A stretch of DNA of 64,000 nucleotides from Guillardia theta CCMP2712 (GCF_000315625.1 NW_005434589.1:199330-263329), one strand, 5' to 3'; positions 7,524 through 64,000 are shown, counted from the first letter of the stretch. Numbers and translations are program-made. The notes: generated by a model not told the origin, from the letters alone.

Positions 7524-8209
7524 ATGGCGAAGGCAACAACGATGGTCATGTTGATGCTTGTCATGGCACTCCCCGTGGTGAGCATGGCGGCATTGAAGGT
7601 AAATTGATTGAATTGATGAAAAGTCACCATGAATTGGAAACTTTTGCGTTCTTCTTGATCATACACGCTCCAACAACAAACTGTTGCTTACTTTTTTGCT
7701 GTCAGATGAAAATTTCATCCCTCAAGTGCACCACTGTGACAAGAGGGTGGGGAGATGACGACCATACCGACCCCGACGGCTGTACTCCACATACTCGCTT
7801 GACCATGCGAGGATGGGGAGATGACGACCATACCGACCCCGACGGCTGTACTCCACATACTTGCTTGACCATGCGAGGATGGGGAGATGACGATCATACC
7901 GACCCCGACGGCTGTACTCCACATACTCGCTTGACCATGCGAGGGTGGGGAGACGACGATCATACCGACCCCGACGGCTGTACTCCACATACTCGCTTGA
8001 CCATGCGAGGGTGGGGCGACGACGATCATACCGACCCCGACGGCTGTACTCCACATACTCGCTTGACCATGCGAGGGTGGGGAGATGACGACCATACCGA
8101 CCCCGACGGCTGTACTCCACATACTCGCTTGACCATGCGAGGGTGGGGAGACGACGATCATACCGACCCCGACGGCTGTACTCCACATTTCAGATCCAGA
8201 TTCGTTTAG
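7524..8209 (+). CDS. Secreted tandem-repeat protein (signal peptide plus ~7 x 22-aa repeats)
   Basis: Exon 1 (7524-7598) encodes MAKATTMVMLMLVMALPVVSMAALK. A phase-0 GT-AG intron spans 7599-7705. Exon 2 encodes MKISSLKCTTVT-(RGWGDDDHTDPDGCTPHTRLTM)x~7-FRSRFV*. Confidence 0.7.
7742..8188 (+). repeat. 66-bp tandem repeat, about 6.8 copies
   Basis: Unit cgaggrtggggmgaygacgaycataccgaccccgacggctgtactccacatactygcttgaccatg, head-to-tail with no spacers. Confidence 0.97.
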
Positions 8210-8840
8210 ATTCCTGGATGTGCAACTTTCGATATTGCGATGACACGAACTGAAGCTTGATGTGTTTGAAAACGTGCTACATGTAACTCTTTCCGGTGTT
8301 TGTTTTAGTTCCTTGACACGCGCAAAATGCTCAAAGTGTTTGCTCTGTAGCAATATTTTGAAGCTAGCTGTGAATATGTATTTGATGAATCAACCAAACT
8401 GTGAAGACTTTGCGAGTCTAAACTTTTGATCGCCGGATCCCCTTTGTTGGTCGATGAATGTCTCAGAACTTCATTCTCATCTTCAAAACGCTCTTGACGC
8501 GTCGATCCGTGAAGTATCAACTCTCTCCTTGAGATGAGTTCCGCCGAGTCGCAGTTCTCACAGTTGGTTGGCAAAATGCTGCCCCTTTCATCTTCTATCT
8601 TCAATGATGGGGCGAGCCTGTAATTTGTTTTGACTAAAGACTGCTTAGCTGAGAATACTCCTACCCCCGCTACCCCTCCCCTGCCGCACCTTCCTCCCCC
8701 TCCTCTGCCCCTCCTCCTCCTCCTCGTCTTCATCTTCTTCCTCTTCCATCATCATCAGCACCATCGCATTGCCTCAATCTTACACTCTTGATCATCGACA
8801 CCTCATAGGCTCTCAGTCTTCGACCTCTCCCGTGCGCGGC

Positions 8841-22426: not shown

Positions 22427-25400
22427 ATGATGGACAGACAGACGGGGAGAATGAAGCGATCTCACCCCTGCATCCCCTTGCTTCTTGGACTCATCTATCT
22501 TTCCCCTCTAGTAACAACACAGGAACTCTCCTCAACTCCCTCCACTTTCTTTGCCACCATCCACTCAAGTTCCAGCTCCACGGCGGTCAACGAAATGACG
22601 AGTACACCAGCACCAAGTGTTGAATCGACCATGCATTCCAGCTCTAGCTCTACTCCCATCAGCGTCCTCGGGTCAACCCCGTCTCCTCTGCATACAAGCA
22701 CCTCGATGATGGGTTCCAGCTCCAGCTCCACTCCGCTGTTGGAGTTCACAACCACAGCAGAGATCCAGTCAAGCTCTTCAAGCGCTACAGTCCCTCTGAC
22801 AACTCCTGTCGTCTTTCCCTCAGTGCCGTGCAACGTCACCTTCGAAAGCATCTGCGCATGCAAGTGGCTCTATGTGCGAGTGGGGTCTCAGTGCGTGCAG
22901 GGAGATGGGCTGTATGTGAGAGTGTCTGACAGCTTCATTGACGACCCACTCGACCAGAGGATGAGCTGGGTGCTCAAGACCGGGAACTTCAAGATATCAC
23001 ACGACCGCTTCTTCTGGAAAATCAGAAATGGCGACCAAGGAAGGTGCCTGGTCTCGTTCGACAAGTCCGAAAATCCTCCGAGCATCAATGATGAATCGTG
23101 GTATTGCTCTAATGACTGCAACCCGACAAGCGAGGCTGTGTTTCAGGGAGCCAGCCCGTTGAAAGGCGTCAAGATTGAATGCCTCGCTACACCCCAGGAA
23201 TACAACTTCACCACAGGAGTGCAAGACATCTGGTCAGTCGGCTTCAACTTCTACGGAGAGCTCGCGAGGCTTGAAGGGAAGGGAGGGGTTGATGGAGTAG
23301 AGACTCTCGGCGTCATACAGGTACAGCCCTCCAACTCTCGAGCGCTTGAAAGTGTGACTGACGTGCGTTTCCAGGCTCTCAATCAAGAAAAGGTCGAGCA
23401 GCTTTCTCTGGGTTGCAACCATGGCGCCGCAAGAACGTCGTCCGGGAAGCTTTGGACGTGGGGTTCCAATGCTCAGGGGCAGCTGGGCTATTCTTCAGCT
23501 GCGGGGTTTGCGGTAGCAAATGCCATACCTCAGGTTGTGAGTCAGGCAGAGAGAGTGTCGGAGGTAAGAGCAGGAGGCTCTTTCACCCTTTTCTTCATGG
23601 GAGATAAGGGCTCCCGGGGGTTGTTCGGCATGGGGTCGAACAGATATGGCCAGCTCGCAAGGGAGGAAGGGTTCGCAACCGACTCAATCTTAGAGACCCC
23701 GCAGCAGGTTCCGGTCGATGCTAGCAACGTCACCGCCATTGCTGCGGGCAGGCATCACGTCCTGCTTCTCAACAGCTCTGGCCTGTTCTCGTGGGGACAC
23801 AACGAGTACGGGCAGCTGGGTCGATCGGAGGGGATCGGCACGACAGAAGCAGGAGACTACCGCATCGTCAAGGTCAGTGCCTCTCAGTTCGAGGGGAAGC
23901 GAATCGCCTCAATCGCGGCTGGGAGGTATCACTCTCTCGCTCTCACCGAGGACGGCGACGTCTACTGCTTCGGGTCAAACTTTCGCGGCCAGTGCGGGCC
24001 CGCAAGTCCGGATGGCAGCAGCCAGCCGATCTTGAATGACGCCAACCCGACCCCGAAGAAAATCCCCAGGAGTCTCCTCGGTAACGAGGCAGCTAGCTGG
24101 GTTGCAGCTGGGCAGTACGCCACCTTCGTAGTGATGCAGAGTGGAAAGCTCTGGGGATTCGGGCGAAATTTCCATGGGCTGTTGACAGGGGCGGCGGGGC
24201 AGGTGGGGACAGGGGTACCAGTGTCAGTACCGTTCCTGCTGTCCGACCAGCTCGAGACGAGTCTGGGAGGCTCTGGGAAGGTGCTGAAGCTTGTGAGCGG
24301 CAAAGATCATGCGATCCTCATGGTCGAGCGAGACAACCAGACCGACCCCGAGCTGCTCGTGGTCGGGTCGAACGGCTACGGGCAGCTGGACGGTGTGGTG
24401 GGGAAGGGAGATGACAGCCTCGTCTTCAGGAAGCTGGGAGGGGTTCTGACAACCTGCGCAGGGCAGGGGCCCCTGTCAAGGAATGGCACGTGCAAGAGCG
24501 GGAGGATGAAGATCATGGACGTGGGCGTGGGATGTGACCAGACCATGATAGTCACTGAAAGGCCCGAATGTCCTCCCGGGACTTACTCACCTACCAACAA
24601 GCAGCCCTGCTTCCTCTGCCCTCCCGGCAAGTACCAGGATGGACTTCTGTCCTCCACATCCTCCTGCACCCTCTGCTCTCAGGGCAAGTTCTCGCCAGAA
24701 GGGTCGACGACGTGCACAGTGTGTCCAGCAGGGACGAACACATCAGGCGAGGGCTCAGCTGAGGACGGATGCCTTCAGCTCTGTCCCGCGGGAACCTACG
24801 GGGTCCAACAGGCGATCGGACGAATCGGACTTGCTCCCTGCCGAGCATGCGACGTCAGCCACTACAACGAGCAAGTCGGAGCGACGGCTTGCAAGCTCTG
24901 CCCTGCTCTCACCGACTGCCTCGTGCAGGGAGCGACAAGCGTGTCGTCGTGCCGACCCTTTTGCAACGAAGGATCCTTCAGTCCCGATGGGTTGACCCCA
25001 GCTGGAGGAGCTTGTCAACCTTGCTCAGCTGGGTCCTTCCAGCCGGCGAAGCGCCAGACCACCTGCCTTCTCTGCTCGCCAGGTTTCAAGTCTCAGGGGG
25101 TGGGTGCGACTGTCTGCTCCAGCTGCGCAGCAGGAAGTTACCAGAACGGAGCTGGAAAAACATATTGTGAGAGTTGTGCCCTTGGCTTGTACCAGGAGCT
25201 CCTGAACTCGACGGCTTGCCAGCGCTGCCCGCTGGGGAGCAGCACGACAGCCATCGGGGCGTCGAGAGCGGAGCAATGCGTCCTGAGCTCGTCTCAGTGG
25301 TGGAGCTTCGGGGTAAACAAGTTTAACAACACTGACCCGGGTGTATACACGAAGGAGGTACAGGAGATCGTCTTTCCTCCTGCCCTGGTCGCCAACGATG

Positions 25401-28400
25401 TTTCAAACCTGGGGAGCAAGTTCGGGAACAGGAGGGTAACAGAAGTGGCAGCTGGTAGCTCGCATACTCTCTTCCTCACCGACGACGATCGACTCTACGG
25501 CATTGGCGACAACTTCTACGGTCAGCTCGGGTCGAGCAGCGGGATGCAGCCCAGCTGCTACGAGCCTGGCCCGCTGCTGCCAGCGTGCGATCCCATGATA
25601 GCGAGGAAGCAAGAGATCGTGGAGCTGGAGAGATCGCTGTTCGGGCCCGACCCGATCAGCAAGATCTTTGCGGGCAGGTGAGGAGGAGGAGGAGGAGGAG
25701 GAGAGAGGGGAGGGAGAGGCGAAGTGGGAGGGGCAAGGGAGGAGGAAGTGAGAGTAGTAGCTGGGGGCAGGGAGGGGGTAGGGTAGGCGGTTTGTGACCC
25801 CTCTGACCTCCTGCCTGTTAGGAGCGTGTCAGCTGTTCTCAGCTCTACGGGTCTTCTTTTCACTTTCGGTTACAACCGTTATGGACAGCTCGGGCATCAG
25901 GGTAACGTGGGGACGGATAGGCCCAACCATCTCCCACGAGCCCTCCAGCTGCCAGCCGGGGGGGTTGATGACGTAGCGATCGGGGAGAACCACATGCTAG
26001 TCAGGACCAACACCTCTAGAGTCTTCTCCTTCGGCCTGAACCGCTTCGGTCAGCTGGGCTTCTGCTCAAGTGCTGGAAGCTGGGGACCCAACGGGGCTCC
26101 TGTGGAGCTATTGCTGAACTTCAAGGTAAGCGGCATGGCGGCGGGAAGGAAGCACTCGCTGCTGCTGGCAGAGGACGGAGGCGTCTGGAGCTTCGGAAGC
26201 AACGATCGCGGTCAGCTGGGGATCTTGGAACAGCAGCTCGTGTACGGAGGATTCGTCTGCTTGCCCGCTCACGTCCCTGACGTCCCAGCTGGGAGGCAGG
26301 TGGCCGCAGGACGATCTCACAGCGTGCTAGTGAGCAAGGAGGGTCAAGTGTGGGGCTTCGGGAACAACGAGTACGGGCAGCTGACCGGCTCGCCGTCCTC
26401 TCCCGTGCTGAGCGCCGTGAGGATGTTCGAGCAGGAGACGGCCAACCTCTCCATCGTGTCGGTGGGGTCGCGAGAGATGCTCAGTTTCTCGGTGCTGTCG
26501 AGCCCCAGCACCGACGAGAGCCAAGTGGTGCTGCAAGGGAGAAACAACGCGGGCCAGTTGGACCTGCTCCCCTCCTCCTCTGCCGCCAAGAACGTCCTAA
26601 GCATCTGCCCCTTCCTCCCCTGGCAATCCTGCGATGAGTTTGCTTTCGCTACCTTGCAGTCGGGAGGCGAGAACGTCTTCCTCGAGGTATTTGAGAGCTC
26701 TTCGAGCCCCCTGCTGTCCTTACGTCCTCTTCAATCGTCGATCCACCGCTTCTCCTCCTCTCTACATCTCTTGCACTCTCTGATCTCATCACTTCATCCT
26801 CCTCTCTCACACCAATCGCGTTGCTCCCATCGCTCCCTTGCATTGACGTCTTCTCGACGTAGGTCATCTCCAAACGATGTCGCCCTGGCACTAAGACCGC
26901 CGTTACCCCCAACGTCACGGGCCACGTGCTCCTTTGTGACGCGTGCGAGGCGGGTAAGTCCCATCCTCCTCCTCTCACGACCTCAGCTCTCCCGCCAGGC
27001 AAGTTTTCTACCCAGCTAGGAGTGACCGCTTGCTCCATCTGCCCCGAGGGCACCTACTCAGCAACGGGAGCAACCTCGTGCGAAGCTTGTCAGGTCCTCC
27101 AGTATGCAGGAACCGGCGCCTCTGCCTGCCTCGAGTGCCCGATCAATCCCTCCTCCTCCAGCGATCCGGCCCTCTCCTCCCCCAGCCAGGTTGCTCTCCT
27201 CGTCATCCTCATCCTTTGACTTTCCTCGCAGCTCGCTCGCTGCTGCCGTCCAGGTCGCTACCTCAAGGACGGTGGCCTCTCCTGCGCCCCCTGCCCCAAC
27301 GGCAACATCTCCACCTCAATCGGGTCCACCGCCTGCTCCTACTGTGAGCTGGGAAAGTACGCTAATGGCCCCGACAATACCGCCTGCCTCGACTGCCCCC
27401 CGGACACCTGGACCCTTCCTGGAGGAGCTGGGGGCGTTCAGGACTGCAAGGCATACTGCCAGCCAGGGACAGCAAGTCTGAACCAACAGGGTATAGAGCC
27501 TTGCATCGACTGCCCCCAGGGAAAATTCACCAACTCTACGAGGCAGACCACGTGCCTTACCTGCCCTTCTGGCTTCTACACCCCCGGCAACGCCTCCACC
27601 TTCTGCTCCAGCGCCTGCCCAGCTGGTTACTACAGCAGCACTGGTCTACATCCTTGCACGCCTTGCCCGGCCGGATCCTTCACCTTCCAGCCGGCAAGCA
27701 GGAGCTGTCAACCCTGCCCTCCCGGCAACTTCTCCAGCTTGCAGGCGTCGAGCACGTGCCGTGCTTGTGCCCTCGGCTACTTCCAGAGCCTCTCGGACAG
27801 CACAAGCTGCTCCCCGTGCTCTCCAGGCACCTTCGGGAACCAGCTCGGGCAGTCAGCCTGCCTCGCTTGTCCCGGGGGGAAGTACCAGGACGAGCATGCG
27901 GCCAAGAGCTGTAAGACATGCGATCCGGGCCAGGCCCCCTCCTCCCCGACTGAGAGCACCAGCTGCTTCTCCTGCCCTGCTGGCTCTGAGTCTCCGGTCG
28001 GAGTCAATTGCTCCACCTGTCCTCCAGGATCGTATGCGCTCTCTTCGTCGTCGAGCTGTCAGCTGTGCGTCAGAGGACAGTACAACCCGTACTTCGGCTC
28101 CTCCTCCTGCACTTCCTGCTTGTCGGGGACAACCGTGTCCGAAGGGTCTGTATCGCCCGAGCAGTGCGTCGGGTTCATCTCGAAGAAGCTCTTGGTCGAC
28201 GACCCCAGAGCCGGTCAAGTTTCCTCTCTCCTCATCTCGTTCTCCCTTCACTTCCATTTGCAACGCGGGTCGGAGATCCGCGTCGGCCTCCCCAACTTCA
28301 TCTATGCCGGACAGAACGTCCAGCTGACAGCCAGCACGCCGGAGCTCCAGAACGTCTCCCTAGCCGGCAGCTGGAGACAAGCCGATGCTACGATCCCCTA

Positions 28401-30527: not shown

Positions 30528-32346
30528 ATGACCACCATATCCACGAGGTTGATTTCCTTTATACAGTATTCTATCGAGCTGACCCTCCTTTGCTAGGTCC
30601 CTCACCACCGCACGTGGTTTCCTGCCTTACCTGGTGCTGTTTCTTTCCGTATCAGCATGTGCTGCCACCATGGTCGACAGTCCCGAGATCGGCATCCCCT
30701 ACCTGTACAAGGGTCTCATCACCTGGGCCTTCTTCTGGGCTTTCCTTGACGCCTTCACCATCGGGGCCAACGATATTGCCAACGCCTTCGCTAACGCTGT
30801 TGGAGCCAAGACCATCTCCTTCAGGACAGCTGTCCTAATCGCGTGCGTCTGCGAGCTTGTTGGTGTGATTGCTCTGGGCAGCACTGTGACCGATGCTGTG
30901 CGCAACAAGATGGTCAAGGTAGACTGGTTCAAGCATGATCCTTACATCCTTTCCCTGGGCATGAGCTGCGTCAACCTTGGCTCTGGTGGATGGGTGTTTG
31001 TCGCCACCACGCTGTCTATGCCTGTCTCCACTACTCACTCGGTTGTTGGCGCCATCCTTGGTATCGGTGTTGCAAGCTGGGGTGCTTCTGGAGTGAACTG
31101 GGGCTATGACGGAGGGTTTGGTGGAATTGTTGCATCCTGGTTCATCTCACCCGTCCTCTCTGGAGTGTTGTCTGCGATCTTCTACCTCAGCACCAAGTTC
31201 CTCGTGCTCAAGCATCCCGACGATGTCGCCGTCAAGCGCGGCATTGCGCTCCTTCCCGTCTACTTCTTCTTCGCCTTTGGCGTCGTGGCCGGCTTCATGG
31301 TCATGAAGGGAATCCCTGCATTGAAGAATACACCTTACGAAATTACTGTGCCCGTCACGTTTGGAATTGCTATCTTCTTTGGCATCGTCGGTTACATTTT
31401 TTGCGTGCCATGGACTCGTCGTGCTATTGTGGACAACGAGAACCTGCCATGGTACACGCTTTTCTACATCTTCGCTATTCCAGTTGGCTCCAGAGGTTAC
31501 AACGAGGAGAATAACGTGCAAGATCAGAACAAAGTCGATCTCGTTGAGACTGGAAACTTTAATCAGAACATGCCACAGCCTTCCATGTACTTCAACCAGG
31601 CTCCAATGATGCCTGGTCAAGCCCCCATGATGGTTCAGGGTTCTTACTTTGGAAAGGATGAAATCGAGGACAAGCCACAGAGCGACGGCATCACCACCAC
31701 TGTTCTCAAGACTCTCTTCCCTGGATTCTACATGGACGTCGGAGGCCTCAAGGAGGAGGATGCTGCCATGCACGCCAAGGCCTTCCAGGCTTACTCCAAG
31801 ACAGAGGAGATGTTCAAGATCCTCCAGCTCACCACCTGCTGCTTCTTCTCCATCGCCCACGGCGCCAACGATGTGGCCAACGCCATCGCTCCCTTCGCTA
31901 CTGTCTGGATGGTCTACAGCACCGGCACGGTTTCAAGCAAGGCGGAGGTTCCCATCTGGCTTCTGGTCTACGGAGGTCTCGCGATCGATCTCGGTTTGTT
32001 GAGCATGGGCTACTACATCATGGACGCTCTTGGCAACCGCCTGACCCTTCAGTCTCCTTCCCGCGGCTTCTGTATCGAGCTGGGAGCTATGTTCACTGTG
32101 ATGACCTTCTCTCGTCTCGGAGTTCCTGTCTCCACCACTCACTGCATCTCCGGTGCCACCACTGCTGTCGGACTTTGCAACGGAGACGTCGGAGCTGTCA
32201 ACTGGAAGCTCATCGGCATCATCTTCGGCGGATGGATCCTCACTTGCCCATGTGCCGGCATTGTGACTGGTCTGCTCTACTGGGCTGTCGCCGCTGCTCC
32301 ATCGCCCGTGGCAGGCAACGGATTCTTCACTGGTTATCACGGTTAA
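30528..32346 (+). CDS. PiT/PHO4-family (SLC20/Pho89-like) phosphate symporter, copy 1
   Basis: Two signature motifs (GANDIANAF, GANDVANA) and two PVSTTH motifs. Exon 1 (30528-30547) plus a 49-nt intron adds the signal-peptide-like MTTISTRSLTTARGFLPYLVLFLSVSACAA. Confidence 0.95.
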
Positions 32347-32384
32347 GAAGACCAGCGTCTATTTCTGCTGGTGCCGTTTCAAAC

Positions 32385-42900: not shown

Positions 42901-43615
42901 AAATCTTATCGACGTTAAGACGGTTACACTCTGGTCAAAGTGTGTGTGGTAAAGCTCTCGATCAAACCAATGCACGAAGTTTGAAGAAGTGTGACCGTTA
43001 CAATCCGTTACTTTGCCGCAATGCGGCGATTCATTGAACGCTGAGGTGTCAACTGTGGATGTGAGTCGTGCACTAGAGTTACTCGTTTGTGTTGTCACTT
43101 AAAAAAGGATCACCGATACTTCAATTTTACGTAGTGTTCGTTTGGAGAATCAAAATCAAATGAGTGTTTGCGTTTCTTGAGCTGCTCCACTTGAGACGTT
43201 CCGGCAGACACATCTTCAAAACCCACTCCACTCATCACCTTGCTGATCAGCTCCAGCCCCTGCTCTCTCCAGGCAAAGCACACGTGCTTCAATATTATGC
43301 ACGTACAAATTCTCTTTCTGCCCACTTTCTCCATTACTTCTCATGCTTTCGCTGTACTTTGAAAATACTAATCCACTGTTTCCTACACTGAACCTTTAGT
43401 AAAAAGAGTTCACTTCGTCAGGTACATGCTAGCCGGAGTTCAATCTCTGAAGCCATCCCAAACCTTAACACATGCACAGATCTCCCCTTTCTCCTTCAAG
43501 AAATAATTTTGCAACATCTCTTGCTTTGCTCCCCAGACTTTTTTCCGCCCTTTCGACTCCCGCTTCACCTCATCCCTCATCCCTGGACCATCAGTCTCTC
43601 CTATTGTCCCGTGTC

Positions 43616-43821
43616 CTGCCCTGCCCTGCCCTGCCCTGCCCTGCCCTGCCCTGCCCTGCCCTGCCCTGCCCTGCCCTGCCCTGCCCTGCCCTGCCCTGCC
43701 CTGCCCTGCCCTGCCCTGCCCTGCCCTGCCCTGCCCTGCCCTGCCCTGCCCTGCCCTGCCCTGCCCTGCCCTGCCCTGCCCTGCCCTGCCCTGCCCTGCC
43801 CTGCCCTGCCCTGCCCTGCCC
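43616..43821. repeat. (CCCTG)n microsatellite
   Basis: Perfect pentamer run of about 41 units. Confidence 0.98.
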
Positions 43822-44198
43822 TCTTCATTGATCCTTCATCTTACGGCTCATCAGTCCATTTTTCTATGTCCTTCACCACCCCACCTAGCTACATTATTTC
43901 TTGCCCCATACACTACCCTACCCCATTAATTTCGTCTCCCTGATACCCACCCTTAATGCTTATAACCCTACCCCTGGGTAGGGTGAACCAAACAATCCTA
44001 CCACCCCCTAACTTACGCTAAGAATCTATAAACATAACCCTCCCCATGTGCGTCATGAAGACCAGTACCCCCACCTTCATTCACTTGTTCCGAACTTTGT
44101 AACCACGGGTAGTATGTAGCAACTCGACGTACCCCACCACATCGGTTGCCCGACAGTACCCCCCATGGCTATCTACCATCCGACTGCGCTACAGTACT

Positions 44199-49700: not shown

Positions 49701-50049
49701 CATCGTAACCGCTAACTTGTCTGTCCCTTCTCCATATCATTCACATGCACTTTTATTTGGATTGCTATCTCCACGTCCTTCTCATTCCCACAACCTCGGC
49801 CCCTCCCCTTGCACTGCATAGCTACCGTTCTACTGGTTCCATCTCACCCCTTTCACCTCTCCTCTTGTCTCTGTCCTCCTCATACTGCTTCCCCTCCTGC
49901 TGCTCATCCCCTCCTCCCTTTCCATCCCTCTCCTAGTAGATGCTCTCTCCCCGTCCCTCCCTTCCCCATCCTCCCTCCCCTTCCGCCCTCGCTCATCTCT
50001 GCCGCCACCCAGCCTCCATTAACTAAAATTGTGATACTTTTGAAGGGTG

Positions 50050-50335
50050 CGAGTCGAGAGTGCCACCGGGCCGGGGGGCTCAGTGACCGTGCTCCGGGCG
50101 TACCGTACCGAGTCACGAGTCACTGAGTCGAACTCCCGGAAACGCCGGGCCCGGCGGACGGTCCGATCGGGCCACGCGGCCCGCCGCCGGGCGGCCCGCC
50201 GCCGTACTGTGCCTGTAACGCCGGTACGGTCACAGCCGGGCGTGGACCGGCGGACTCGGGCCCGGCGCCGCGACTCAGCGCGGCCTGCCCGGCTGGGTGC
50301 CGGGGTGGCCGTGGACTGCAGCCTGAAATGGTCAC
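50050..50335. other. GC-rich intergenic island (CCGG/GAGTC vocabulary)
   Basis: cgtaccgtaccgagtcacgagtcactgagtc, ccgggcccgg, cggtccgatcgg, ccggtacgg and gactcagcg. Confidence 0.78.
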
Positions 50336-50530
50336 ATAGTTACGGCGTACTATGTTGAATGGTTGAATTCTGCCCAGAACTGTTCCGACGACCGTATCAC
50401 GCTACGCACATAACACAGGAAAAAATGCGGAAGATCGCGCTATGATTCGGAGGCTCACTGAAAAAGTTTCTTGCACAATAATTTAAGTTACAAGCAAAAA
50501 TGTTCACGCAAAAGCTTTGATGTCTGTGAA

Positions 50531-51640
50531 TTAGGCGATGAAAGTTCCCTGATCATCCTTGACAGATCTCACAGTGGTGAAATACTTCGCAAGCGTCTTC
50601 CCAAGGGCATTTCTCAAGATCGGCGCCTGAAAGTTCAACAACCTTAGAACTCATCACATCACCCACGTCTACGTCACCTGTGAGTCAGACGCCTTCCTGT
50701 CAGACTGCGTTGTCTCCTGCTCCTGCACGGCATTGAACAGAGACAGGAACGAATGCCACCTGTTACCTGCAGCCTTGTAAGCGAGTCGAAGGTCCTATCC
50801 CTCTGCCCAAGATGCGTCAGTCGCTGAATCTGTCGAGTCTGCTCATGGAAAGGACCGATTGATGACGCGGCCTGTCTTGCCAGCTCGAGTGCATGCTCCC
50901 CCCCTGATGACGCAGGTGCATTCAGGGAGGAAAAAGCTTGCAAATTCGTCTCACATCAGCAGCAGCGATCAAGCCTTGGAGGGAACCAGGATCTAAGTCC
51001 GTCCTTGCCCGCTGAAAGATAGCCACGTTATGCCACAGCCACACTCACGCAGTAAGATGCACAACCTTGAGGGAGAATTGTACAACCTTCTCCTTCTGTT
51101 TTTCAGACTTGAGATTATGTTGGTGAGTTCTAAAACTGACTTACCGGGCTGAAAACGCCCAATGAATCCAAGACAGTCGAGTTACGACCAGACCCAAATG
51201 ATAACACCAATGCTACATTTGATATATCAACCATTCTCTTAGAAAAAAATTACCATCTTACCAAGAGCACCGCACATAGCAAACGCAAGGGCAGCCAAAG
51301 CATATCTTGAATATCTGGGGATTCCATGCATGAGAACATCTTACATACTTCTGCAACAACTTGACACCTATTCTCAGGCATGGTGCTGCCCTTTGCGTCT
51401 TCCGCACCTGGAGCAACAAAGACGGTGTCACACGCACAGGAAACTATGCTTCTCACAAGGGAACAGTTGAGCTTTCAACAGGGTAAGGATGAGAGGAAGA
51501 GAGAGGCAAAACTATGAGGAGGATACAGGAGACAAAGAAGATGCCAGTATGAAGGCAGCAGAGCTGACTCTGTGCCTTATGCTCATCTCAAGCGGCCAGG
51601 TGAGCGTGCCGTACCTTGAAAGGTGCCGAATGATGCCATG
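50531..51640 (-). CDS. Hypothetical multi-exon protein
   Basis: Several open exons bounded by GT/AG (e.g. AFSSLNAPASSGGEHALELARQAASSIG…). No motif recognised. Confidence 0.35.
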
Positions 51641-51824
51641 GGCTTGTGATGGGTGTGGGTTGACATGGGATGGTATCATTCTTTTGAGGGTAGGGGTTAC
51701 ATATAATCTCCCAAGAGCCCCTATTTTGAACAATAAATAGTGGGGTACGATAAATTTATGGGGGGTACTTTCCTTTAACATGGGGGTCATTCAAATGGGG
51801 GTCCAACAAATTCCTGAAGTGGCG

Positions 51825-52115
51825 CGCAGGGTCGGAGGCTGATAACCTACGAAACTTGTGACTCCCGGCCCGTACTAGGCTTCGGAATCCCGGCGCCGCG
51901 GCGCCGGCCGGCCCGGGACCGTACCGTACGGTGATCGGACTCCGAGCGCGGCCGCGGGCTGTGTTGCGGATGCCAGGCTCCGGCTCCGGCTCGGCCCGGG
52001 CCTATCAGTCCGCCGGACCATGTGAGCCTACCGGCATTGCTTTGGTGTTCAACCAATCTGACTCCAGTGAGTTACTAGCCTAGTAGCCTGAACTCCGACC
52101 GCCGGCAGCAGCAAG
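51825..52115. other. GC-rich intergenic island (CCGG/GAGTC vocabulary)
   Basis: gtgactcccggcccgtac, gccggccggcccgggaccgtaccgtacgg and tgactccagtgagt. Preceded by a GGGGTA-rich tract at ~51640-51810. Confidence 0.78.
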
Positions 52116-52192
52116 GCTTCAAATGCCTCCGAGTACCCTCCGACTCATCAAAGATTCAGGCTGAGTGAGATGCTGCGTCCATGTGCAAGGCC

Positions 52193-53150
52193 AGAAGCTC
52201 ACATCCAGCAGTCTGCACTGAGCCGTTGCGCGGGGGAGTCTTCGAATCTTCCGCCGCTGTCGTTCCAACGTTGCCGCACTCCGTTGAACTTCGAACAAAC
52301 CGAGCAGACTCGTGACAGGCTCAACAAGCTGAACGGTGGTCGAGTTAACGGTCAACCGGATAGATTGTATATGTTATGAATCATTCATTTTCTTTGTATC
52401 TGTATGAATTTTCCTTCATCACCTTTGATTGACACTATAGCTACGAATTTCTTTGTGAACAGATGTGATTATTTCATCTTTGGTGAAATTTTGCTCCATG
52501 CGCAAAGCTTGCCTCTACCAGCGGGGACAATCAATTCCATCTGACCATCTGGAAGCTCAGCAAGATGAAAGACCTGAAAGTGGTGCGCAGGACGTTGATG
52601 CAAATTTCCAACACCCTGGTCTACAATCAGTGGGCTAATCGGGGCTTTGGAGAAGAGAAACTCGCAGCGATTCACTTGTGCGCCATGTCAGGAGGAGGGA
52701 GGACTGGGCAGGGACGTCTATACAAAGTAGAGAGCTTCATTAAGCTCGCTGCTTCCTCCTCTTGCCTACCTTCAGTCGTCTCCTGGAATTGCAATTACTC
52801 AAGAGACTACCAGAAGGCCTCGGAAGACGAAGCAAGATACCAGCTTTCGGTAAGCTCTCAGCGTGGTAAACTTAGCTGGACCTCCATGCCTTCAGTCGTC
52901 TCCTGGTTTCCTCAGACTAGAAAGGGCAAACGGCCTCCTCCTCCTTCCAACTCTAGCAAGCAGAAGATCGAGCGGAGGTATGGCGCCTGGAGCAGCATGC
53001 CGTCTGTGGTCTCGTGGTTCTCTACGGGAGGGAGCAAGAGTCCAGCTAAGAAACGATGAGTTTACCCAAGTCTGCTGGAGATTGCAGCAACCGGAGAAGC
53101 GGAGGGAATGAGAAGAAGTGGAGACAGCCAAAGGGTCAAGCAAACGGCTG
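52193..53150 (+). pseudogene. Truncated, internally deleted duplicate of the LOTUS-SAM-2H gene
   Basis: 52193-52504 aligns to 61758-62056 and 52505-53147 aligns to 63358-64000. About 1.3 kb is missing at the gcgca|aagctt junction. The intron is retained, so this is a DNA-level copy. Confidence 0.92.
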
Positions 53151-53431
53151 AGAGGTCAACGAGGACACGTGCTGGAGGTTCAGTTCCTGCACGCTACTGA
53201 ACGAGTCTCTGTAATATCTGAACCCAAGCCTCTACAGCTGGCGCTTGCTGTACTGGCTTAACTTTATGTATTCACCACCTATCGCGGAGCTTCGCGTGTT
53301 TATCCTTGAAAAATCTACTTACAAGTTGCTTGCGCGGCTGTTCAATGCGATCATCACGGCATGTGCAATCACATTCGCACCCATCAGCATCGAACAACTG
53401 TCCTTCTCCATCCCTTTGCTCGCCTTCCTCC

Positions 53432-54439
53432 TCACGATACAAAGTTGAACCATCCCGTCACTATCCGCTTCTCCTGGGACGGGGACGGGACCCCACGGTG
53501 TGTGAAGGTCCAGTCCGCTGGCCACACGAGCGTGAGCCCCTTCTTGGGCTGCACGGTGACCTTCTGGTGGTAGAACTCCGTCCCTCCTGCATCGTCCACC
53601 TCATTCAGGTACGTCATGAACACCAAATGGCGCGAGCCTTCTGGCTGCCCCCCGCCGGTCCGCTCTGTATGAAAGGTCTTGTACCCTCCTCCAGGAGGAT
53701 AATACTGAAAGTTGGAGCGGGAGACTTGGGTGTTTCTACCGCTCAGTTATAGTGGAATGCGGGTTGGTCTGTAGGGACCGCCAGGGAGAGGTAGGTGACG
53801 ACCACCCCTCCCTCCTCTACCCACTGCTGGAAGGACGCGGGCCACTCGTAAGCCACGGGCACGGCGAAATGGCTCTGCTCCGAGGTGATCCTCCCCACGC
53901 AGGCCCTGGACGCCGCCCAGAGGCTCGTGGAGGGCTGCACCTTGGCGATGTCCTGCAGCCATGACCGCATCCCCTTCTCGCAGAGCGCGTCGTCGTCGGC
54001 CAGGCGAAGGACGTCCACAAGGCCCACGGTGGTAGTCCTCGTGATGCAGTTCATGGGGTTGTTGGCGAAGCAGATGGTCTGGAACGCCCTGCTCAGGATG
54101 AGATGGCGCGTGCCTTGGTAGTCGAACATGCGGTTGTCCTGAACGAGGTTGTCTATGAGGCCGGCCAGCGCGTTGCCGATGACGTGTTCCCTTCATGGAG
54201 ATCATTCCTCGCAGCTGTCCTCTCGGATTGTTCTCAAAGCAGTGGATCAGGTCATCGCAGATGCTGTCGTCTAGCATCCGCCATGCCCCCATGAACATGG
54301 CGCCCTCGGGCAATGCGAACTTTTCGAGAGCAGCCGCTGTCCCTCCGACTTGCTGTTGCTGTGGGACAGCAAGTGAGTTGACTGCCTTGTCCTTCTTCTT
54401 TCCACTCGATGAGGAAGCTGAAAATCCCTTCGCCTGCAT
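53432..54439 (-). pseudogene. 2OG-Fe(II) oxygenase (cyanobacterial/cyanophage P4H-like type), interrupted by foreign coding-like DNA
   Basis: C-terminal part NFQYYPPGGGYKTFHTER…RHLVFMTYLNEVDDAGGTEF…WPADWTFTHRG…KRIVTGW; N-terminal part DDSICDDLIHCFENNP. The middle (~53745-54185) is in another frame. Confidence 0.75.
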
Positions 54440-54474
54440 AAGCCCTGTTCAGGCACTGAATGATACTCGCCAGT

Positions 54475-54985
54475 AGTCACTAGTAATGTCACGGTGCAAG
54501 TCTCCCGGGCCAGGCTGACTCCTCAGAGTCAGGCCGCGCCGGGCCGGGGGCTTGACGGGCCAGCCCGCCGGGACGGTCTGCCGTCACTGCCAGGCCCGAA
54601 GTGCCGGGTGACACGCCGACAGCCTGTGGACTGAAAACCGCGGCAGTTGGATGGTCTCTCAACAGTCTCGCCGGGCCCTCACACTCATCTTGGCCTCTCC
54701 CAGTTTCAACGCCGCCGGCGTCATACCGTACCGGCGGTTCAAGTTGTGGTATGGTCATCCCTCGGAGATATCGCTGAGGCCGCCGTGTGCGTAAGCCTTC
54801 TCGGCTCCGAAGTTGTCCTGGCCGCAGCAAGAGACAGTGGGCTATGAAGTGTGCTGATCATGAAGCTTGTCGGAGCAATGTGGCGCCGGCATGAGACTGC
54901 CATGCCTGAGACAGTCAACAGAGTCGTGAAAGCGAGCCGAGAATAAGTACGGTCACCGTGGAACGCGGCTTGGCCGCTCAGTGAG
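54475..54985. other. GC-rich intergenic island (CCGG/GAGTC vocabulary)
   Basis: tgactcctcagagtca, gccgggccgg, ccgtaccgg, tacggtcaccg and ctcagtgagtga. Confidence 0.7.
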
Positions 54986-55142
54986 TGATGGCGAACCGTC
55001 ACTTTCACAGTGTGAGTGTTGCGGCCCCTCAAGTGTCTTTTTCCAGTTTATTACAACCTTCGAATCAAAGATTGTTTGCAAACAAACCATAAATAAATTT
55101 AATGCACACAAAGCCGATGCCACGGAATCAATGAAAATAGCC

Positions 55143-56954
55143 TTAACCGTGATAACCACTGAAGAATCCGTTGCCTGCCACGGGCGATGGAGCAGCGGCG
55201 ATGGCCCAGTAGAGCAGACCAGTCACAATGCCGGCACATGGGCAAGTGAGAAGCCATCCGCCGAAGATGACACCGACGAGCTTCCAGTTGACAGCTCCGA
55301 CGTCTCCGTTGCAAAGTCCGACAGCAGTGGTGGCACCGGAGATGCAGTGAGTGGTGGAGACAGGAACTCCGAGACGAGAGAAGGTCATCACAGTGAACAT
55401 AGCTCCCAGCTCGATACAGAAGCCGCGGGAAGGAGACTGAAGGGTCAGGCGGTTGCCAAGAGCGTCCATGATGTAGTAGCCCATCGTCAACAAACCGACG
55501 TCGAGCGCGAGACCTCCGTAGACCAGAAGCCAGATGGGAACCTCCGCCTTGCTTGCAACCGTGCCGGTGCTGTAGACCATCCAGACAGTAGCGAAGGGAG
55601 CGACAGCGTTAGCCATGTCGTTGGCGCCGTGGGAGATGGAGAAGAAGCAGCAGGTGGTGAGCTGGAGCATCTTGAACATCTCCTCGGTCTTGGAGTAAGC
55701 CTGGAAGGCCTTGGCGTGCATGGCAGCATCCTCCTCCTTGAGGCCTCCGATGTCCATGTAGAATCCAGGGAAGATGCACTTAAGAACACTGGTGAGGATG
55801 CTGTCGTTCTGTGGCTTGTCCTCGATTTCATCCTTTCCAAAGTAAGCACCCTGAACCATCATGGGGGCTTGACCAGGCATCATTGGAGCCTGGTTGAAGT
55901 ACATGGAAGGCTGTGGCATGTTCTGATTAAAGTTTCCAGTCTCAACGAGATCGACTTTGTTCTGATCTTGCACGTTATTCTCCTCGTTGTATCCCATTGA
56001 ACCAACAGGAACGGAGCAGATGTAGAACATGGTGTACCATGGCAGGTTCTCGTTGTCCACAATAGCACGACGAGTCCATGGCACGCAGAACAAGTAACCG
56101 AAGATGCCAAAGAAGATGCCGATGGCAAAGGTGACGGGAACAGTAACTTCGTAAGGTGTCTTCTTCAATGCAGGGATTCCCTTCATGACCATGAAGCCGG
56201 CCACGACGCCAAAGGCGAAGAAGAAGTAGACGGGAAGGAGCGCAATGCCGCGCTTGACGGCGACATCGTCGGGATGCTTGAGCACGAGGAACTTGGTGCT
56301 GAGGTAGAAGATTGCAGCCAACACTCCAGAGAGGATGGGTGAAATGAACCAGGATGCAACAACTCCACCAAACCCTCCGTCATAGCCCCAGTTCACTCCA
56401 GAAGCACCCCAGGTTGCAATACCGATACCAAGGATGGCGCCAACAACCGAGTGAGTAGTCGAGACAGGCATAGACAGCGTGGTGGCGACGAACACCCATC
56501 CACCAGAGCCAAGGTTGACGCAGCTCATGCCCAGGGCAAGGACGTAAGGATCATGCCTGAACCAGTCCACCTTGACCATCTTCTTGCGCACAGCATCGGT
56601 CACAGTGCTGCCCAGAGCAATCACACCAACAAGCTCGCAAACGCACGCGATCGAGACAGCTGTCCTGAAGGAGATGGTCTTGGCTCCAACAGCGTTAGCG
56701 AAGGCGTTGGCAACGTCGTTGGCTCCGATGGTGAAGGCGTCAAGGAAAGCCCAGAAGAAGGCCCAGGTGATGAGACCCTTGTACAGGTAGGGGATGCCGA
56801 TCTCGGGACTGTCGACCATGGTGGCAGCACATGCTGATACGGAGAGAAACAGCACCACGTAAGGCAGGAAACCACGTGCGGTGGTGAGGGACCTAGAAAG
56901 CAGGATCAGGATCGAAGGTCTTGGGGGAGAACAATACCTCTTGGACATGGTCAT
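55143..56954 (-). CDS. PiT/PHO4-family phosphate symporter, copy 2 (inverted paralogue)
   Basis: GANDVANAF and GANDMANA motifs; highly similar to copy 1. A 45-nt intron (56893-56937) sits at the same position after MTMSK-R. Confidence 0.95.
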   Translation of the reverse strand: MTMSKRYCSPPRPSILILLSRSLTTARGFLPYVVLFLSVSACAATMVDSPEIGIPYLYKGLITWAFFWAFLDAFTIGANDVANAFANAVGAKTISFRTAVSIACVCELVGVIALGSTVTDAVRKKMVKVDWFRHDPYVLALGMSCVNLGSGGWVFVATTLSMPVSTTHSVVGAILGIGIATWGASGVNWGYDGGFGGVVASWFISPILSGVLAAIFYLSTKFLVLKHPDDVAVKRGIALLPVYFFFAFGVVAGFMVMKGIPALKKTPYEVTVPVTFAIGIFFGIFGYLFCVPWTRRAIVDNENLPWYTMFYICSVPVGSMGYNEENNVQDQNKVDLVETGNFNQNMPQPSMYFNQAPMMPGQAPMMVQGAYFGKDEIEDKPQNDSILTSVLKCIFPGFYMDIGGLKEEDAAMHAKAFQAYSKTEEMFKMLQLTTCCFFSISHGANDMANAVAPFATVWMVYSTGTVASKAEVPIWLLVYGGLALDVGLLTMGYYIMDALGNRLTLQSPSRGFCIELGAMFTVMTFSRLGVPVSTTHCISGATTAVGLCNGDVGAVNWKLVGVIFGGWLLTCPCAGIVTGLLYWAIAAAPSPVAGNGFFSGYHG

Positions 56955-57879
56955 TGCAACGAATGGAAGGCTCGAGTCTATCAGCTGCAAGAGCAGGAAG
57001 GGGATCAACGAACGCGGAAGCTCACTGAGATGAGTAGAGCACGGAGGAAGAGTCACGCGTGGGCAGGGGAGGCGAAGTGGACCAGAGGAGGTTTCACGTA
57101 ACCTTCACATCAGAGAAGCAAGGAGGCACCCCCTACCCCCTCCATACTATCACCCCCACCCTATGTTTCCTGCCACCTGCATCTGGAGTACCCACTTTGT
57201 ATACTGCAATGTTATGGAAAAGGATAGGGTACAATGGACACACTGCGGTCGGGAGTAGCGAAACGTCAGGTCAGGGGGTAGTTCTACGTCTGCATTAGGG
57301 ATCGACGAGAAGGCATCTTTTCGAAATCTACGCCTCTTGGTAGGGGTGTAGACTGCCTGAGAAGAAGGGGGTCTTCCTAGGGCTTTTGAGGGTAGGGTGG
57401 TCCTCTGTGGAGCCGTAGTACCAGGAATGACCAGAAAAAAAGGGAAAGAGGAACGCTGTCAACGTCTGTGGGGACAAATGACCAGAAAAAAAACAGAACG
57501 AACCCCCACCATAGGCAACCTATGACCCACCCACCATGCCTTGAAGAGGCACCCTACCTTCTAGGAGGTTCCCAGTAGGCATCATAGCACCAACAGATAC
57601 CACTGGTAGTCACTGCCAGGTGCCCGCTTGCGGGGGTTCAAAATAAGGTCAAAGAGCAGCAGGGTAGGGTATCGCCGTTGATAGGGTAGTGACAAGAATT
57701 ACAATATTATATATAAAACAGCTGCTCGTAGAACGGTTACATCGATTGGTCCAACGTAACGACAAAGGGATCCGTGTGCAAAAATGGCGGGAGCGCTCGG
57801 GTCGATGAAGCATTATGAGAAAAGAGCGCTGCGCGTAACCGCATGACAAGACGTGTAAACAGAATTATTCTGAGCAACT

Positions 57880-60408: not shown

Positions 60409-63400
60409 ATGTCGCTCTGCTGAGAGGGGACACCTGGAAATGCGCTCGGGATCAAGGTACGGCGGCGCATTAAGTGGAGACGACGGAGGGAAGGTTTCAG
60501 ATGTACAGGACACAAGATTGAAGAGAACAACTCAGATAGAATCGTGTTAGATGAAGATGTGATGGAGCTGGCAAAGTGAAACTTTGTCATGGTCAGACAT
60601 CCAGTTTGCAGAATCCTTTCCTACGGGATTATTGGGGTGTGCGATTGAAGAGCGAGGGACAATGAGGGAGAAGCAGGACAAGGAGGTCGTACAGACAAAA
60701 TGGATTTAGAGACGAAAGGACAAGAAGAAGTGAAGCATGAAGGGCGATGGGCTGATTGATTGTCATGAGCAGGGTCCGTACACGAAACAAGAATGCGAGC
60801 GAGACAGCGTCTCATGGTAGATGTAGACCTATTTGCGTGCTCTTGTTTCTCACATCGCCTCTTTTTGGTCGAACTTTGACTTGGGCTGGCTGATGTGGCT
60901 ACATCATCAGCCAGGTAATCATCAAACGATCTCTGGCAGATTGTTGTATATTTTTTGCCTCGATTTTCATCTAAGCATTGTGATGTCTTAGTGTTGAGTT
61001 TCCAACCGATCATGGGCATTTCGGAAGCACGATTGAAGAGGTGTTGCTGGAGCAGAGGCTTGCTGTGAAAGACGATTCTCATGCTTTCATGTTAGATCCG
61101 TGAGAGAACACGACAGCAGGGCATGCAGCTTGTCTCAGAGTCTGCAAGGGTGCTCTAGAATGCCTTCATTGACTGCAAGGTTGACTTGCCACAGGGGATG
61201 ACTATCAGAGAGATAGAATCTTTCTGGCCGTCCAAGTTTGGGTGAGTACAACAAGTTACACCCAATTCAGTACGTGAGTTTGATACTAATCCAGGATCAA
61301 CCTTCCGACTGAAGATTGTGGATTTCGGGTCTTCTTCATCTCTGCATGCCTTGTTGCCAAGGCAGTGACTTTCTCTTGATGCAGAGCGCATTAGATCTCT
61401 TCAGAGGTTTGCAGGTAGTATCAAATTGCGAAAGGTACCACAGGCTCTTCTTATGCTGTGGCAGGGTTTCGTTGTCAGGGTTTCGTCTTACGGGAAGGAA
61501 AACGTCGTCACCGTAGATCCAAATTATGCCTCCAAAGTACCACAGGCTAGAGTCTCTGCTGGTATCACTACTCCGCAAAGCCAAGTCGTCAATGCCCCAC
61601 TGAGCAGAGGGCTAGCCGTTGAGCAGAGGGCAGCCACGAATGCTCCGAGCATTCCTGTGAAGAAGCTGGAACAGCCGAAGAGTACTGGTCACAATGCTGT
61701 GGTGGCGAGCAAGATGCAAGTAAATTCTCAGATTCAACAAAGTCAAAGCGTCACACGAGAAGCTCACATCCAGCAGTCTGCAGCCGTTGCACGGGGGTCT
61801 TCGAATCTTCCGCATGTCGTTCCAACGTTGCCGCACTCAACTTCGAACAAACCAGCAGAACAGGCTCAACAAGCTGAACGGTGGTCGAGTCAACAGGTCA
61901 ACCGGACAGATTGTATATGTTATGAATCATTCATTTTCTTTGTATCTGTCATTGTATGAATTTTCCTTGATCACCTTTGATTGACACTATAGCTACGAAT
62001 TTCTTTGTGAACAGATGAGATTATTTCATCTTTGGTGAAATTTTGCTCCATGCGCAGGTCTTGTCGTGGCTGCGTAGCACTTTGAATAAAGCTGGAGTTC
62101 AAGAGAAGGCAATTGATCTCTATACCAAGAAGTTTCAGCTGCATGGCAAGTTGTTGAATCGATTTACACCCATGCTCATTTGATGGATACAGAGATCCAA
62201 GGAAGCCATTTAAAGCTTCTTGATAACCAGCGCCTGAGGTTTATGTCGAGAATGTAAAGGTCTATTCTAAACAAGCAACACAGAGAAGATCTTGGTATCG
62301 CCATCCTTGGTCATCGATTAGCAATTTTGGAGGTAGGACCGACTTTTGAGATTCAAATGTCCCTTGGTTAAGACAACTTATACATGTTCTGTGACAGGCG
62401 TGCCATCATCTCTTTCCACAAGTATGTCAAAGCGCCTCTGCAACTCAATTTTTCAATGCGACCACCCTCGTGTAACATGGAACCTTCCGTAGGCGAAAAT
62501 CATGCAGGCATCGTCAGTTGGCGTCACGAAGAATGATCCTAGTAATTTGAAATCAGCGAGTCGCCTCATGAAACTGATGAGTTCTCGCGTTCTTCTCCTC
62601 AGTCATAATGGAGCTCTTTAAACTTCATCAGACAAACCTAAATGCTATCTCAAAGTTGCAAACTGACCTCCAAGCAGCTGAGAGACGATTAGCAGAGATG
62701 GTGAGGCGACGAGGATAGCCATTTTTCTCGTGTTCATCTTTGATTTACTTCGTTGTCTTCCAGGCACGGGACTCGAATACCGCTTCAAAATCCTCATCGC
62801 AAAGTGTTCTTCCAGCTGGCACAACCAATACTGTGAAGAGTGCCGGAGAGAGAAAGATTATTTCCAGCAAGGCAATCGCGAAGACAGCAGGGCAAACGGA
62901 AGCAGCACCCGCTACTCAACAACATGCATCTGCGCCACAAGTTCAGTTGTCAACATTTCCACAAGATGCCAACAGAATGACGCACTTCGTCTCATTGCCG
63001 ATTGTAAATCCAAGCATCTTGCAGAATGTTGCCAGAATCCAACAGTCGCTGATGAAGTCACACCCAATCTTACGAAGTGGAATGATCGACATCACCAAAT
63101 TGCACATCTCTCTTGCTGTGTTCCGATGTGACAACGATGATGCTCTTTCTAGAGTCCGCAAGGCTCTGCAAGCAAGAGCCCAAGATATCATCGAGTGTGT
63201 GAAGAATCGAGAGGGTTCAAACGTCTCTTCTCTTAAGGTTGCAGGTCTTTCAATGTTCGGGAACCAAGTCCTCTGGTTGAAGATTTCAGATCACGAATTC
63301 TTGCAGAGGATTTCATCTATTGTTTTGGAGGCGGTGAAGAGCGCTGGTAATGGAGTGAAGCTTGCCTCTACCAGCGGGGACAATCAATTCCATCTGACCA

Positions 63401-63912
63401 TCTGGAAGCTCAGCAAGATGAAAGACCTGAAAGTGGTGCGCAGGACGTTGATGCAAATTTCCAACACCCTGGTCTACAATCAGTGGGCTAATCGGGGCTT
63501 TGGTGAAGAGAAACTCGCAGCGATTCACTTGTGCGCCATGTCAGGAGGAGGGAGGACTGGGCAGGGACGTCTATACAAAGTAGAGAGCTTCATTAAGCTC
63601 GCTGCTTCCTCCTCGTGCCTACCTTCAGTCGTCTCCTGGAATTGCAATTACTCAAGAGACTACCAGAAGGCCTCGGAAGACGAAGCAAGATACCAGCTTT
63701 CGGTAAGCTCTCAGCGTGGTAAACCTAGCTGGACCTCCATGCCTTCAGTCGTCTCCTGGTTTCCTCAGACTAGAAAGGGCAAACGGCCTCCTCCTCCTTC
63801 CAACTCTAGCAATCAGAAGATCGAGCGGAGGTATGGCGCCTGGAGCAGCATGCCGTCTGTGGTCTCGTGGTTCTCTACGGGAGGGAGCAAGAGTCCAGCT
63901 AAGAAACGATGA
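60409..63912 (+). CDS. OST-HTH/LOTUS + SAM + AKAP7-like 2H phosphoesterase protein
   Basis: Spliced GMTIREIESFWPSKFG|INLPTEDCGFR|SALDLFR|GFVVRV (LOTUS-like); WSSQQ|VLSWL…EIQGSHLKLL…EDLGIAILGHRLAIL (SAM); THFVSLPI…LHISL…FHLTI (two HxS/T motifs). The start is uncertain. Confidence 0.78.
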
Positions 63913-64000
63913 GTTTACCCAAGTCTGCTGGAGATTGCAGCAACCGGAGAAGCGGAGGGAATGAGAAGAAGAGGAGACAGCCAAAGGGTCAAGCAAACGG

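Follow-up and report, generated by a model that had tools for sequence, protein, structure and literature searches.

What process adds short runs of bases to DNA lying beside the GC-rich islands of the Guillardia theta nuclear genome, and do such additions build the islands? The question is raised by a window of 64,000 nucleotides from strain CCMP2712 (the whole stretch of DNA analysed; coordinates are counted from its first letter), in which a duplicated gene fragment carries a cluster of small gains close to an island. The original prediction, made from this DNA alone, was that a local, directional, motif-generating insertion process, or strong selection for binding sites, spreads from the islands and makes them out of ordinary DNA. 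Our analysis supports this interpretation in part.

Anatomy of the locus

Repeat finding and BLAST identified the segment 52193–57442 (copy A) as a tandem duplicate of 61758–67846 (copy B), located about 10.4 kb downstream. The gene in copy B is expressed, and comprises a long open exon (61426–61896), SAM-like exons and an AKAP7/2H-phosphoesterase domain. Copy A starts in the middle of that exon, retains the next intron, and at 52504 joins the equivalent of position 63358. The features of the locus are listed below.

51812–52119, no strand: GC-rich palindrome island (GC ≥0.68 run at 51812–52051; originally placed at 51825–52115)
52120–52192, + strand: transposon fragment of about 70 bp, consensus positions ~575–639 of a dispersed family of length >1.2 kb
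52193–52350, + strand: copy of the last ~139 nt of the source exon (61758–61896), frameshifted relative to the source protein
52351–52504, + strand: copy of the source intron (about 61897–62057), with a 6-nt loss and 3 substitutions
52505–53880, + strand: distal part of the duplicate, 99.2% identical to source 63358–64728, with 6 substitutions
54466–55010, no strand: second GC island, within copy A; the positional counterpart in copy B (64829–65400) is not alignable
61758–62057, + strand: end of the exon plus the following intron in the expressed parent gene (the source), with an open frame at 61426–61896 and an RNA contig
62057–63357, + strand: source stretch of about 1.3 kb missing from the copy, with the SAM-like exons and the opening half of the 2H domain
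63358–64000, + strand: source counterpart of the distal part, running past the window to an assembly gap at 64729–64828

From the island onwards, the locus is a patchwork of a 70-bp transposon fragment, gene sequence, a skip of 1.3 kb and gene sequence again, and its junctions are blunt or 1-nt. The mRNA contig of the source gene skips the source intron and includes 950 nt of spliced exons corresponding to 62057–63357, the stretch deleted in the copy; in the copied intron (52351–52504), the 3′ splice site is deleted at the junction. The distal part encodes the C-terminal half of the AKAP7/2H-phosphoesterase domain (PF10469, matched on relatives) together with downstream DNA, and its only gaps are five single bases that are absent from the low-quality contig end of the source, in the 50 bp before a 100-N gap. 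The copy lacks the start of the gene and the exons upstream, is frameshifted by a net +19 nt, and has the 1.3-kb internal deletion that includes the 3′ splice site. Since intron and flanking non-coding homology are retained, it represents a DNA-level segmental duplicate pseudogene, not a retrocopy.

Several other features of the surrounding DNA were recorded. The dead copy retains, intact, a 164-codon frame of the parent C-terminus (52565–53059, + strand) with two synonymous and two non-synonymous differences; this frame gave no Pfam match. Further downstream, a phosphate transporter of the PHO4 family is encoded on the other strand (55146–57056, − strand), with paralogues at 30579–32347 (+ strand) and, beyond the window, at 65404–67846; the three form a mosaic of identical and divergent blocks, suggestive of gene conversion between copies. 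The region affected by the 100-N gap just past the window end spans 64680–64828 in window numbering, the 50 bp preceding the gap being short by five single bases relative to the paralogue. In DNA and RNA contigs from public runs, 53726 is followed by 167 other letters and then by 54188, which is probably how copy B reads across the gap. Towards the end of the duplication (57300–57330 versus 67700–67750), copy B is about 20 nt longer than copy A in non-coding DNA; these extra letters contain ctgactgaggagtcc and are a further island-word-like length difference between the copies. Tandem arrays at 43549–43873 and 7677–8270 have periods of 10 nt and 66 nt, respectively, and a plain GC cut-off would call the former a GC island. 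Introns in the window are short and of GT..AG type, and one encoded protein has its closest named relative in Hanusia phi (66% identity).

Small insertions at the island edge

Alignment of 52193–52504 with the source (about 61758–62057) revealed six gains in the gene copy: +CTGA (52218–52221), +AG (52237–52238), A>CGC (52255–52257), +CGTTG (52282–52286), +G (52302) and +CTCGTG (52309–52314), 20 nt in total. All six had been predicted from the comparison of 52193–52315 with 61758–61865, as had a 1-nt loss just beyond them, which was found at the former 5′ splice site (~52349/52350); a further 6 nt are lost in the intron. The prediction of about five substitutions and no indels in 52505–53147 was likewise borne out, with 5 substitutions and 0 indels in the alignment to 63358–64000, and the match extends to 53880 with 6. 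Six of the eight indels fall in the first 125 of ~1690 bp (binomial p ~4e-6 for six or more under an even spread). These 125 bp contain six insertions versus one substitution, and no insertions occur in the 1.5 kb after the rewritten stretch. Substitution divergence is itself uneven, at 0.44% (52505–53880), ~1.7% (52193–52504) and ~5% (past 55015). Gene conversion may have erased older differences in the distal part, in which case the apparent insertion gradient along the copy would look sharper.

Homology to the source had been described as dissolving towards the island; instead, it ends abruptly at 52193, where the transposon fragment starts. The 45 bp directly 5′ of this position match more than 30 loci in the assembly (87.1 Mb, 669 contigs), and belong to a dispersed element of >1.2 kb with at least 36 genomic copies that contain the core. 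This family is represented by 52120–52192 in the window and by loci L005–L030. The fragment carries three insertions of its own, +CG (52130–52131), +CTCCGA (52138–52143) and +GCT (52160–52162), which are absent from 26 of 26 aligned copies. Because the 26-copy consensus lacks them, the polarity of three more events is certain, in DNA of different origin and nearer the island. Altogether, the two fragments contain nine insertions of 1–6 nt within the ~195 bp closest to the island. The +G and +CTCGTG gains lie 6 nt apart and together form CGAG-caga-CTCG, while no one template explains all six gains of the gene copy. The CpG count of the gene fragment rose from 10 to 16 after the insertions. The GC content of the rewritten stretch was nearly unchanged (0.55 to 0.57), a point that lends no support to the original interpretation.

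Reality and polarity of the insertions

Public sequencing runs were compared with the assembly over 51300–54300. An independent DNA run of 2021 (X2) gave a contig of 4716 nt (depth 62) with 0 differences and 0 gaps over 51300–52344, as did a 659-nt contig from 2011 (X1) covering 51686–52344. With contigs from the raw reads of two DNA data sets, ten years apart, identical on the copy, the insertions are not assembly errors, a concern raised with the original prediction. The mRNA of the source gene is represented by an RNA contig of 3242 nt (depth 320), which, compared with the copy, omits 2+2+2+2+5+1+6 = 20 nt at the insertion sites and splices to the downstream exons. Since this mRNA lacks all 20 inserted nucleotides, the gene copy is the derived state. 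The source has an open frame of 157 codons, spliced onward by the mRNA, and together with the mRNA contig and the transposon fragment polarised by 26 copies it upholds the earlier claim that the copy is derived and the source frame open.

The opposite scenario is that the source lost bases or that the assembly is wrong. The source contig does have a low-quality end elsewhere, with five single-base losses before the N gap at 64729. However, the source is confirmed by a deep RNA contig and a long open frame, and a reversed polarity would require a coding exon to have undergone six deletions totalling 20 nt. Moreover, 26 other copies polarise the transposon fragment, and the gene copy is identical in both DNA data sets. 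The probability of this scenario is close to negligible.

A genome search detected no third copy of the gene segment, which answers the earlier concern that an intact paralogue might already carry the insertions. Orthologues from Hanusia phi and MMETSP were sought for polarising the six exon insertions, and the relatives found stop short of the linker exon. RNA specific to the 5′ part of the copy was not seen in 6% of a raw RNA run, and no RNA reads were found on 51502–52107.

Insertions in other copies of the transposon

The nine insertions at the locus adjoin a rearrangement junction, and here one sloppy repair event fits equally well. All nine would then have been made together by low-fidelity template-switching break repair (of the MMBIR, TMEJ or BIR kind) at the island edge; the same event would have taken up the 70-bp transposon fragment as filler, duplicated the gene segment and left out 1.3 kb, with nothing spreading. 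Such a scar would account for a patchwork with blunt or 1-nt junctions, for insertions confined to ~195 bp from the junction with none in the next 1.5 kb, and for a ratio of six insertions to one substitution in 125 bp, far above the ratio in transposon copies. Very short fold-back insertions are known at yeast breaks (PMC11724301), as is stem-loop extension by Pol theta (PMC11292364). Several observations count against it. The same insertion signature extends over 400–970 bp of ordinary transposon copies at three loci (L008, L009 and L030; 10–24 events each), and the other internal junction, at 52505, is free of nearby insertions. Known break-repair scars show deletions and junctional microhomology, while deletions are rare here, with insertion:deletion counts of 79:17 in the transposon alignment and 6:1 in the exon copy. 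We consider a single scar rather unlikely.

The transposon copies also differ widely in insertion load. A young subfamily with 0.3–0.9% divergence carries the TTCCGGAG variant, and older copies carry the TTCAGGAG variant. At similar substitution age, some copies have next to no insertions (L006, 7.4% substitutions and 0 insertions; L013, 8.5% and 1) and others are rich in them (L009, 5.7% and 12; L008, 6.5% and 12 in 428 columns; L030, 17 insertions), such that the insertion:substitution ratio differs more than 10-fold between copies of similar age.

Palindrome signature of the insertions

Polarised insertions were pooled (n = 58); 8 come from the window, 22 occur in a single transposon copy (private insertions) and 28 are present in two copies. 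Odd palindromes, defined by a single-base centre and an arm ≥2 and including inserted bases, were counted and compared with random inserts of the same length and composition placed at the same sites (5000 shuffles). For all 58 insertions, 89 odd palindromes were observed versus 37.4±5.4 expected, a count reached in 0/5000 shuffles. The excess was detected in the window alone (16 with a C/G centre versus 4.6±2.0; 0/5000 shuffles) and among the private transposon insertions (29 versus 12.4±3.0; 0/5000 shuffles). Even (loop-0) palindromes showed no enrichment in the pool (31 versus 29.5, p = 0.41) and did not occur at all in the window set. Across loops of 0–7, enrichment was found at loop 1 alone (25 versus 10.2, arms ≥3). 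The pivot base was C or G in 22/25 cases, and was itself inserted in 19/25.

The usual geometry is flank, pivot, and reverse complement of the flank. At the island edge, every one of the nine inserts consists for the most part of its neighbouring bases reverse-complemented about such a pivot, and so creates or extends an odd palindrome. Palindromes made or lengthened in this way in the window include tcag-G-CTga, GTT-G-aac, gA-G-tc and CTC-c-GAG, with GTC-C-gac and aaaGGCC-C-ggccttt as further fold-back examples in the pool. When real inserts were exchanged among sites of equal length, the number of odd palindromes fell to 56.2±5.1, compared with the 89 observed; a large share of the excess is thus lost on swapping, which shows that each insert takes its template from its own flank. 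Within 300 nt, templating was significant in inverted (p<0.005) and direct (p = 0.01) orientation; within ±14 nt, direct templating was not significant (p = 0.13). In the rewritten stretch (230 bp), odd palindromes rose from 12 to 24, and even palindromes went from 15 to 14.

Insert lengths range over 1–12 nt with no favoured length, the spectrum being flat from 1 to 8 nt. Simple slippage was rejected as a source, as tandem duplications make up just 9/58 inserts, each of 1–3 nt. A mobile mini-element would be a conserved unit inserted whole; here, the inserts differ at each site and only short words recur.

Additions that form palindromes with the flank are also the classic mark of transposases with hairpin intermediates, and of the P nucleotides at V(D)J joints. 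The insertions might accordingly be excision footprints of cut-and-paste transposons, whose hairpin intermediates leave palindromic nucleotides that pile up at landing sites along island edges. P nucleotides predict even palindromes, however, which are not enriched here, and there is no preferred insert length. Target-site-duplication remnants are absent, the tandem flank copies among the inserts being the few of 1–3 nt noted above. The hAT dimerisation domain (PF05699) had no match in the genome, which is a weak negative because a control search was likewise empty. Taken together, these observations make excision footprints very improbable.

The inserts had originally been read as motifs of the adjacent island. 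They do create C/G-centred odd palindromes of the kind found in islands, but they are reversed copies of their flanks, not ready-made motifs. At the locus, the k-mers that they create are weakly shared with the adjacent island (6-mers, p = 0.014; 5-mers, p = 0.04; range p = 0.014–0.07). Tested against an independent island vocabulary, insertion-made k-mers of the pooled set were island-like (p = 0.0013), while those of the eight window events alone were not significantly so (p = 0.13–0.15). The creation of island motifs at the locus itself is thus not supported beyond weak sharing with the neighbouring island.

Composition and turnover of the GC islands

Islands elsewhere (8.9 kb, 42 islands) contain odd palindromes with arm ≥5 at 5.1 times the level of dinucleotide shuffles, compared with 1.9 times for even palindromes. 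Among odd palindromes with arm ≥4, 90% have a C/G centre, and 62 distinct 7-nt cores occur. This excess is lacking (0.7–1.0 times) in non-island DNA, in GC-matched DNA (0.9–1.0 times for these two) and in the GC-rich, apparently coding stretch 23500–28000. The island adjacent to the copy contains odd palindromes such as CCGTACcGTACGG and CGGAcTCCG, and the insertions and the islands therefore have this signature in common. The 12-mer GGCACTGCGGCA occurs 319 times genome-wide (160 forward, 159 reverse) versus 16 for a reversed control, nearly always within GC islands and with unconserved flanks (for example at L034–L053); in transposon copy L016, it appears as or within an insertion. An Rfam scan of 50000–55500 gave no matches.

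Over-representation of island words, with GGCACTGCGGCA recurring in variable contexts, and the island-like k-mers of the pooled insertions might be explained by selection, if islands act as regulatory platforms, depend on palindromic words with a C/G centre, as dimeric-factor sites or hairpins, and recruit adjoining mutations that supply them. Substitutions should serve such selection at least equally well, yet insertions outnumber them six to one in the rewritten exon. The palindromes are also highly diverse in their cores, the inserts are copies of their own flanks, islands at homologous positions are unconserved, and a transcript specific to the dead copy was not seen in the portion (6%) of the raw RNA run. 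Selection is therefore an improbable explanation.

The prediction that islands are built from ordinary DNA was not borne out for the adjacent island, which has no detectable homology to the continuation of either neighbour. Anchored alignment with cheap insertions gave z = 1.5 against the DNA upstream in the transposon and z = 1.7 against that upstream in the source; at a second locus, L008, the comparison of island with transposon continuation gave z = −0.2, versus 24.9 for the positive control. An origin of islands from ordinary DNA is thus a matter of inference. A genome search yielded no second copy of the island (51700–52125) or of the DNA upstream of it (51380–51830). Between copies A and B, the positionally equivalent islands (54466–55010 and 64829–65400) aligned no better than shuffles, even though their flanks are 95–99% identical, from which it follows that islands turn over fast. 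To account for these non-alignable islands, more is needed than the simple accretion of small insertions.

Distance from islands

Distance was analysed in 11 transposon copies with flanks of 0.7–1.5 kb, and GC-rich runs lying outside the element were taken as islands. The density of insertions in transposon DNA fell from 16.7 per kb at 0–150 bp from an island to 12.6 at 150–300 bp, 6.9 at 300–600 bp and 5.3 beyond 600 bp, while deletions per kb were flat over the same bands (2.0, 0.8, 2.5 and 3.0). In a within-copy permutation that kept the number of events per copy, the excess within 300 bp was significant for insertions (p = 0.026) and absent for deletions (p = 0.96). The predicted gradient of indel density towards islands is thus real for insertions but modest, and is dominated by three transposon copies. 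Counter-examples include L016, which abuts an island and has 0 insertions in its first 280 bp, and L011 (~120 bp from an island) and L012 (young and beside islands), neither of which has any insertions. An independent pairwise test on duplicates, by self-comparison of a 284-kb genome sample, yielded too few other duplicates. Of the claim that insertion spreads from the islands, what stands is that other repeats are richer in insertions near islands; at the locus itself, the pattern is indistinguishable from a single error-prone repair tract.

Proposed mechanism

The reading that best accommodates these observations has two joined parts, to which we assign together a probability of roughly 55%: that 52120–53880 forms the 5′ portion of a tandem duplicate without function, joined to a transposon fragment at the edge of a GC island, and that a fold-back or template-switch insertion process, pivoting on C or G, marks island edges. 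As a class of mechanism, short turn-around synthesis with return to the template is the best supported. In this pathway, nicks or breaks concentrated at island edges would start the events, and repair or replication synthesis would turn around, by fold-back or template switch, for a few bases. The turned-around strand would copy the adjoining flank in reverse past a single C/G pivot, after which synthesis would return to the original template, leaving an odd-palindrome insertion. Repeated events would raise the palindrome content and could extend the islands. We infer the enzymology, the role of breaks as trigger and the growth of islands by fold-back insertion. The chemistry of folding back is puzzling and counts against a literal hairpin, as a 1-nt loop is too short for one to form physically.

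A stronger version can be put forward tentatively, as a possibility of clearly lower probability: a highly localised or dedicated palindrome-writing activity that inserts C or G and reverse-copies the flank. It would be self-propagating, as palindromes would attract the lesion that triggers it, and it would make gene-adjacent islands de novo from adjoining DNA, including dead genes and transposons. If true, the sequence of regulatory regions would be generated by a mutational machine and not by selection on point mutations.

If fold-back insertion at island edges is correct, there are defined parts of a eukaryotic nuclear genome in which most sequence change bears one recognisable, insertion-only signature, and the origin of palindrome-built GC islands would be explained. 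It would provide a natural case of template-switch or fold-back synthesis generating structured, possibly regulatory DNA, and the locus, with its expressed parent, dead copy and transposon fragment, would offer a polarity-resolved assay site in the search for the enzyme. Treating such insertions as ordinary indels would mislead alignments, gene models and divergence dating in the G. theta genome.

Comparison with known systems

The local mutation process behind the insertions is apparently undescribed; a literature search turned up no account of either the islands or this class of insertion. Four known systems resemble it in part. At V(D)J joints and in the excision footprints of hAT and Transib elements, P and N nucleotides are added at opened hairpin ends. 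The likeness lies in the palindromic extension of flanks and the GC-biased extra bases. P nucleotides, however, give even palindromes without a pivot, and transposon footprints keep target-site duplications; neither was found here.

GC-rich palindromic repeats are known from organelles, as the GC clusters of yeast mitochondria (PMC4478555) and in green-algal organelles (PMC3162594, PMC4524435, PMC7043297). There, too, GC-rich palindromes build up in and inflate intergenic DNA, and error-prone repair has been proposed. The organelle repeats are discrete repeated units, whereas the present case concerns a nuclear genome, a single-copy island and inserts templated by their own flanks.

Fold-back and templated insertions associated with breaks have been described for yeast Pol delta with NHEJ (PMC11724301) and for stem-loop extension by Pol theta (PMC11292364). 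They share with our insertions a very short, inverted form (mostly <14 bp), templating beside the break, and minimal pairing for priming. In the known cases, the spacer or loop spans several to tens of nucleotides, and deletions or microhomology accompany the insertion. The insertions described here have a one-base spacer, are rarely accompanied by deletions, and would have a break as their presumed trigger.

A further analogy may be drawn with short template-switch mutations, described by a four-point model (PMC5453318, PMC7954356), including the creation of hairpins (10.1101/2021.04.15.439925). In both, the new sequence is the reverse complement of nearby DNA, inverted repeats are made or perfected, and indels cluster with few substitutions. 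In contrast to those mutations, the events described here are nearly pure insertions of 1–12 nt, copied from directly adjoining bases with one C/G base as pivot. They cluster regionally near GC islands, and occur so often that divergence is dominated by them.
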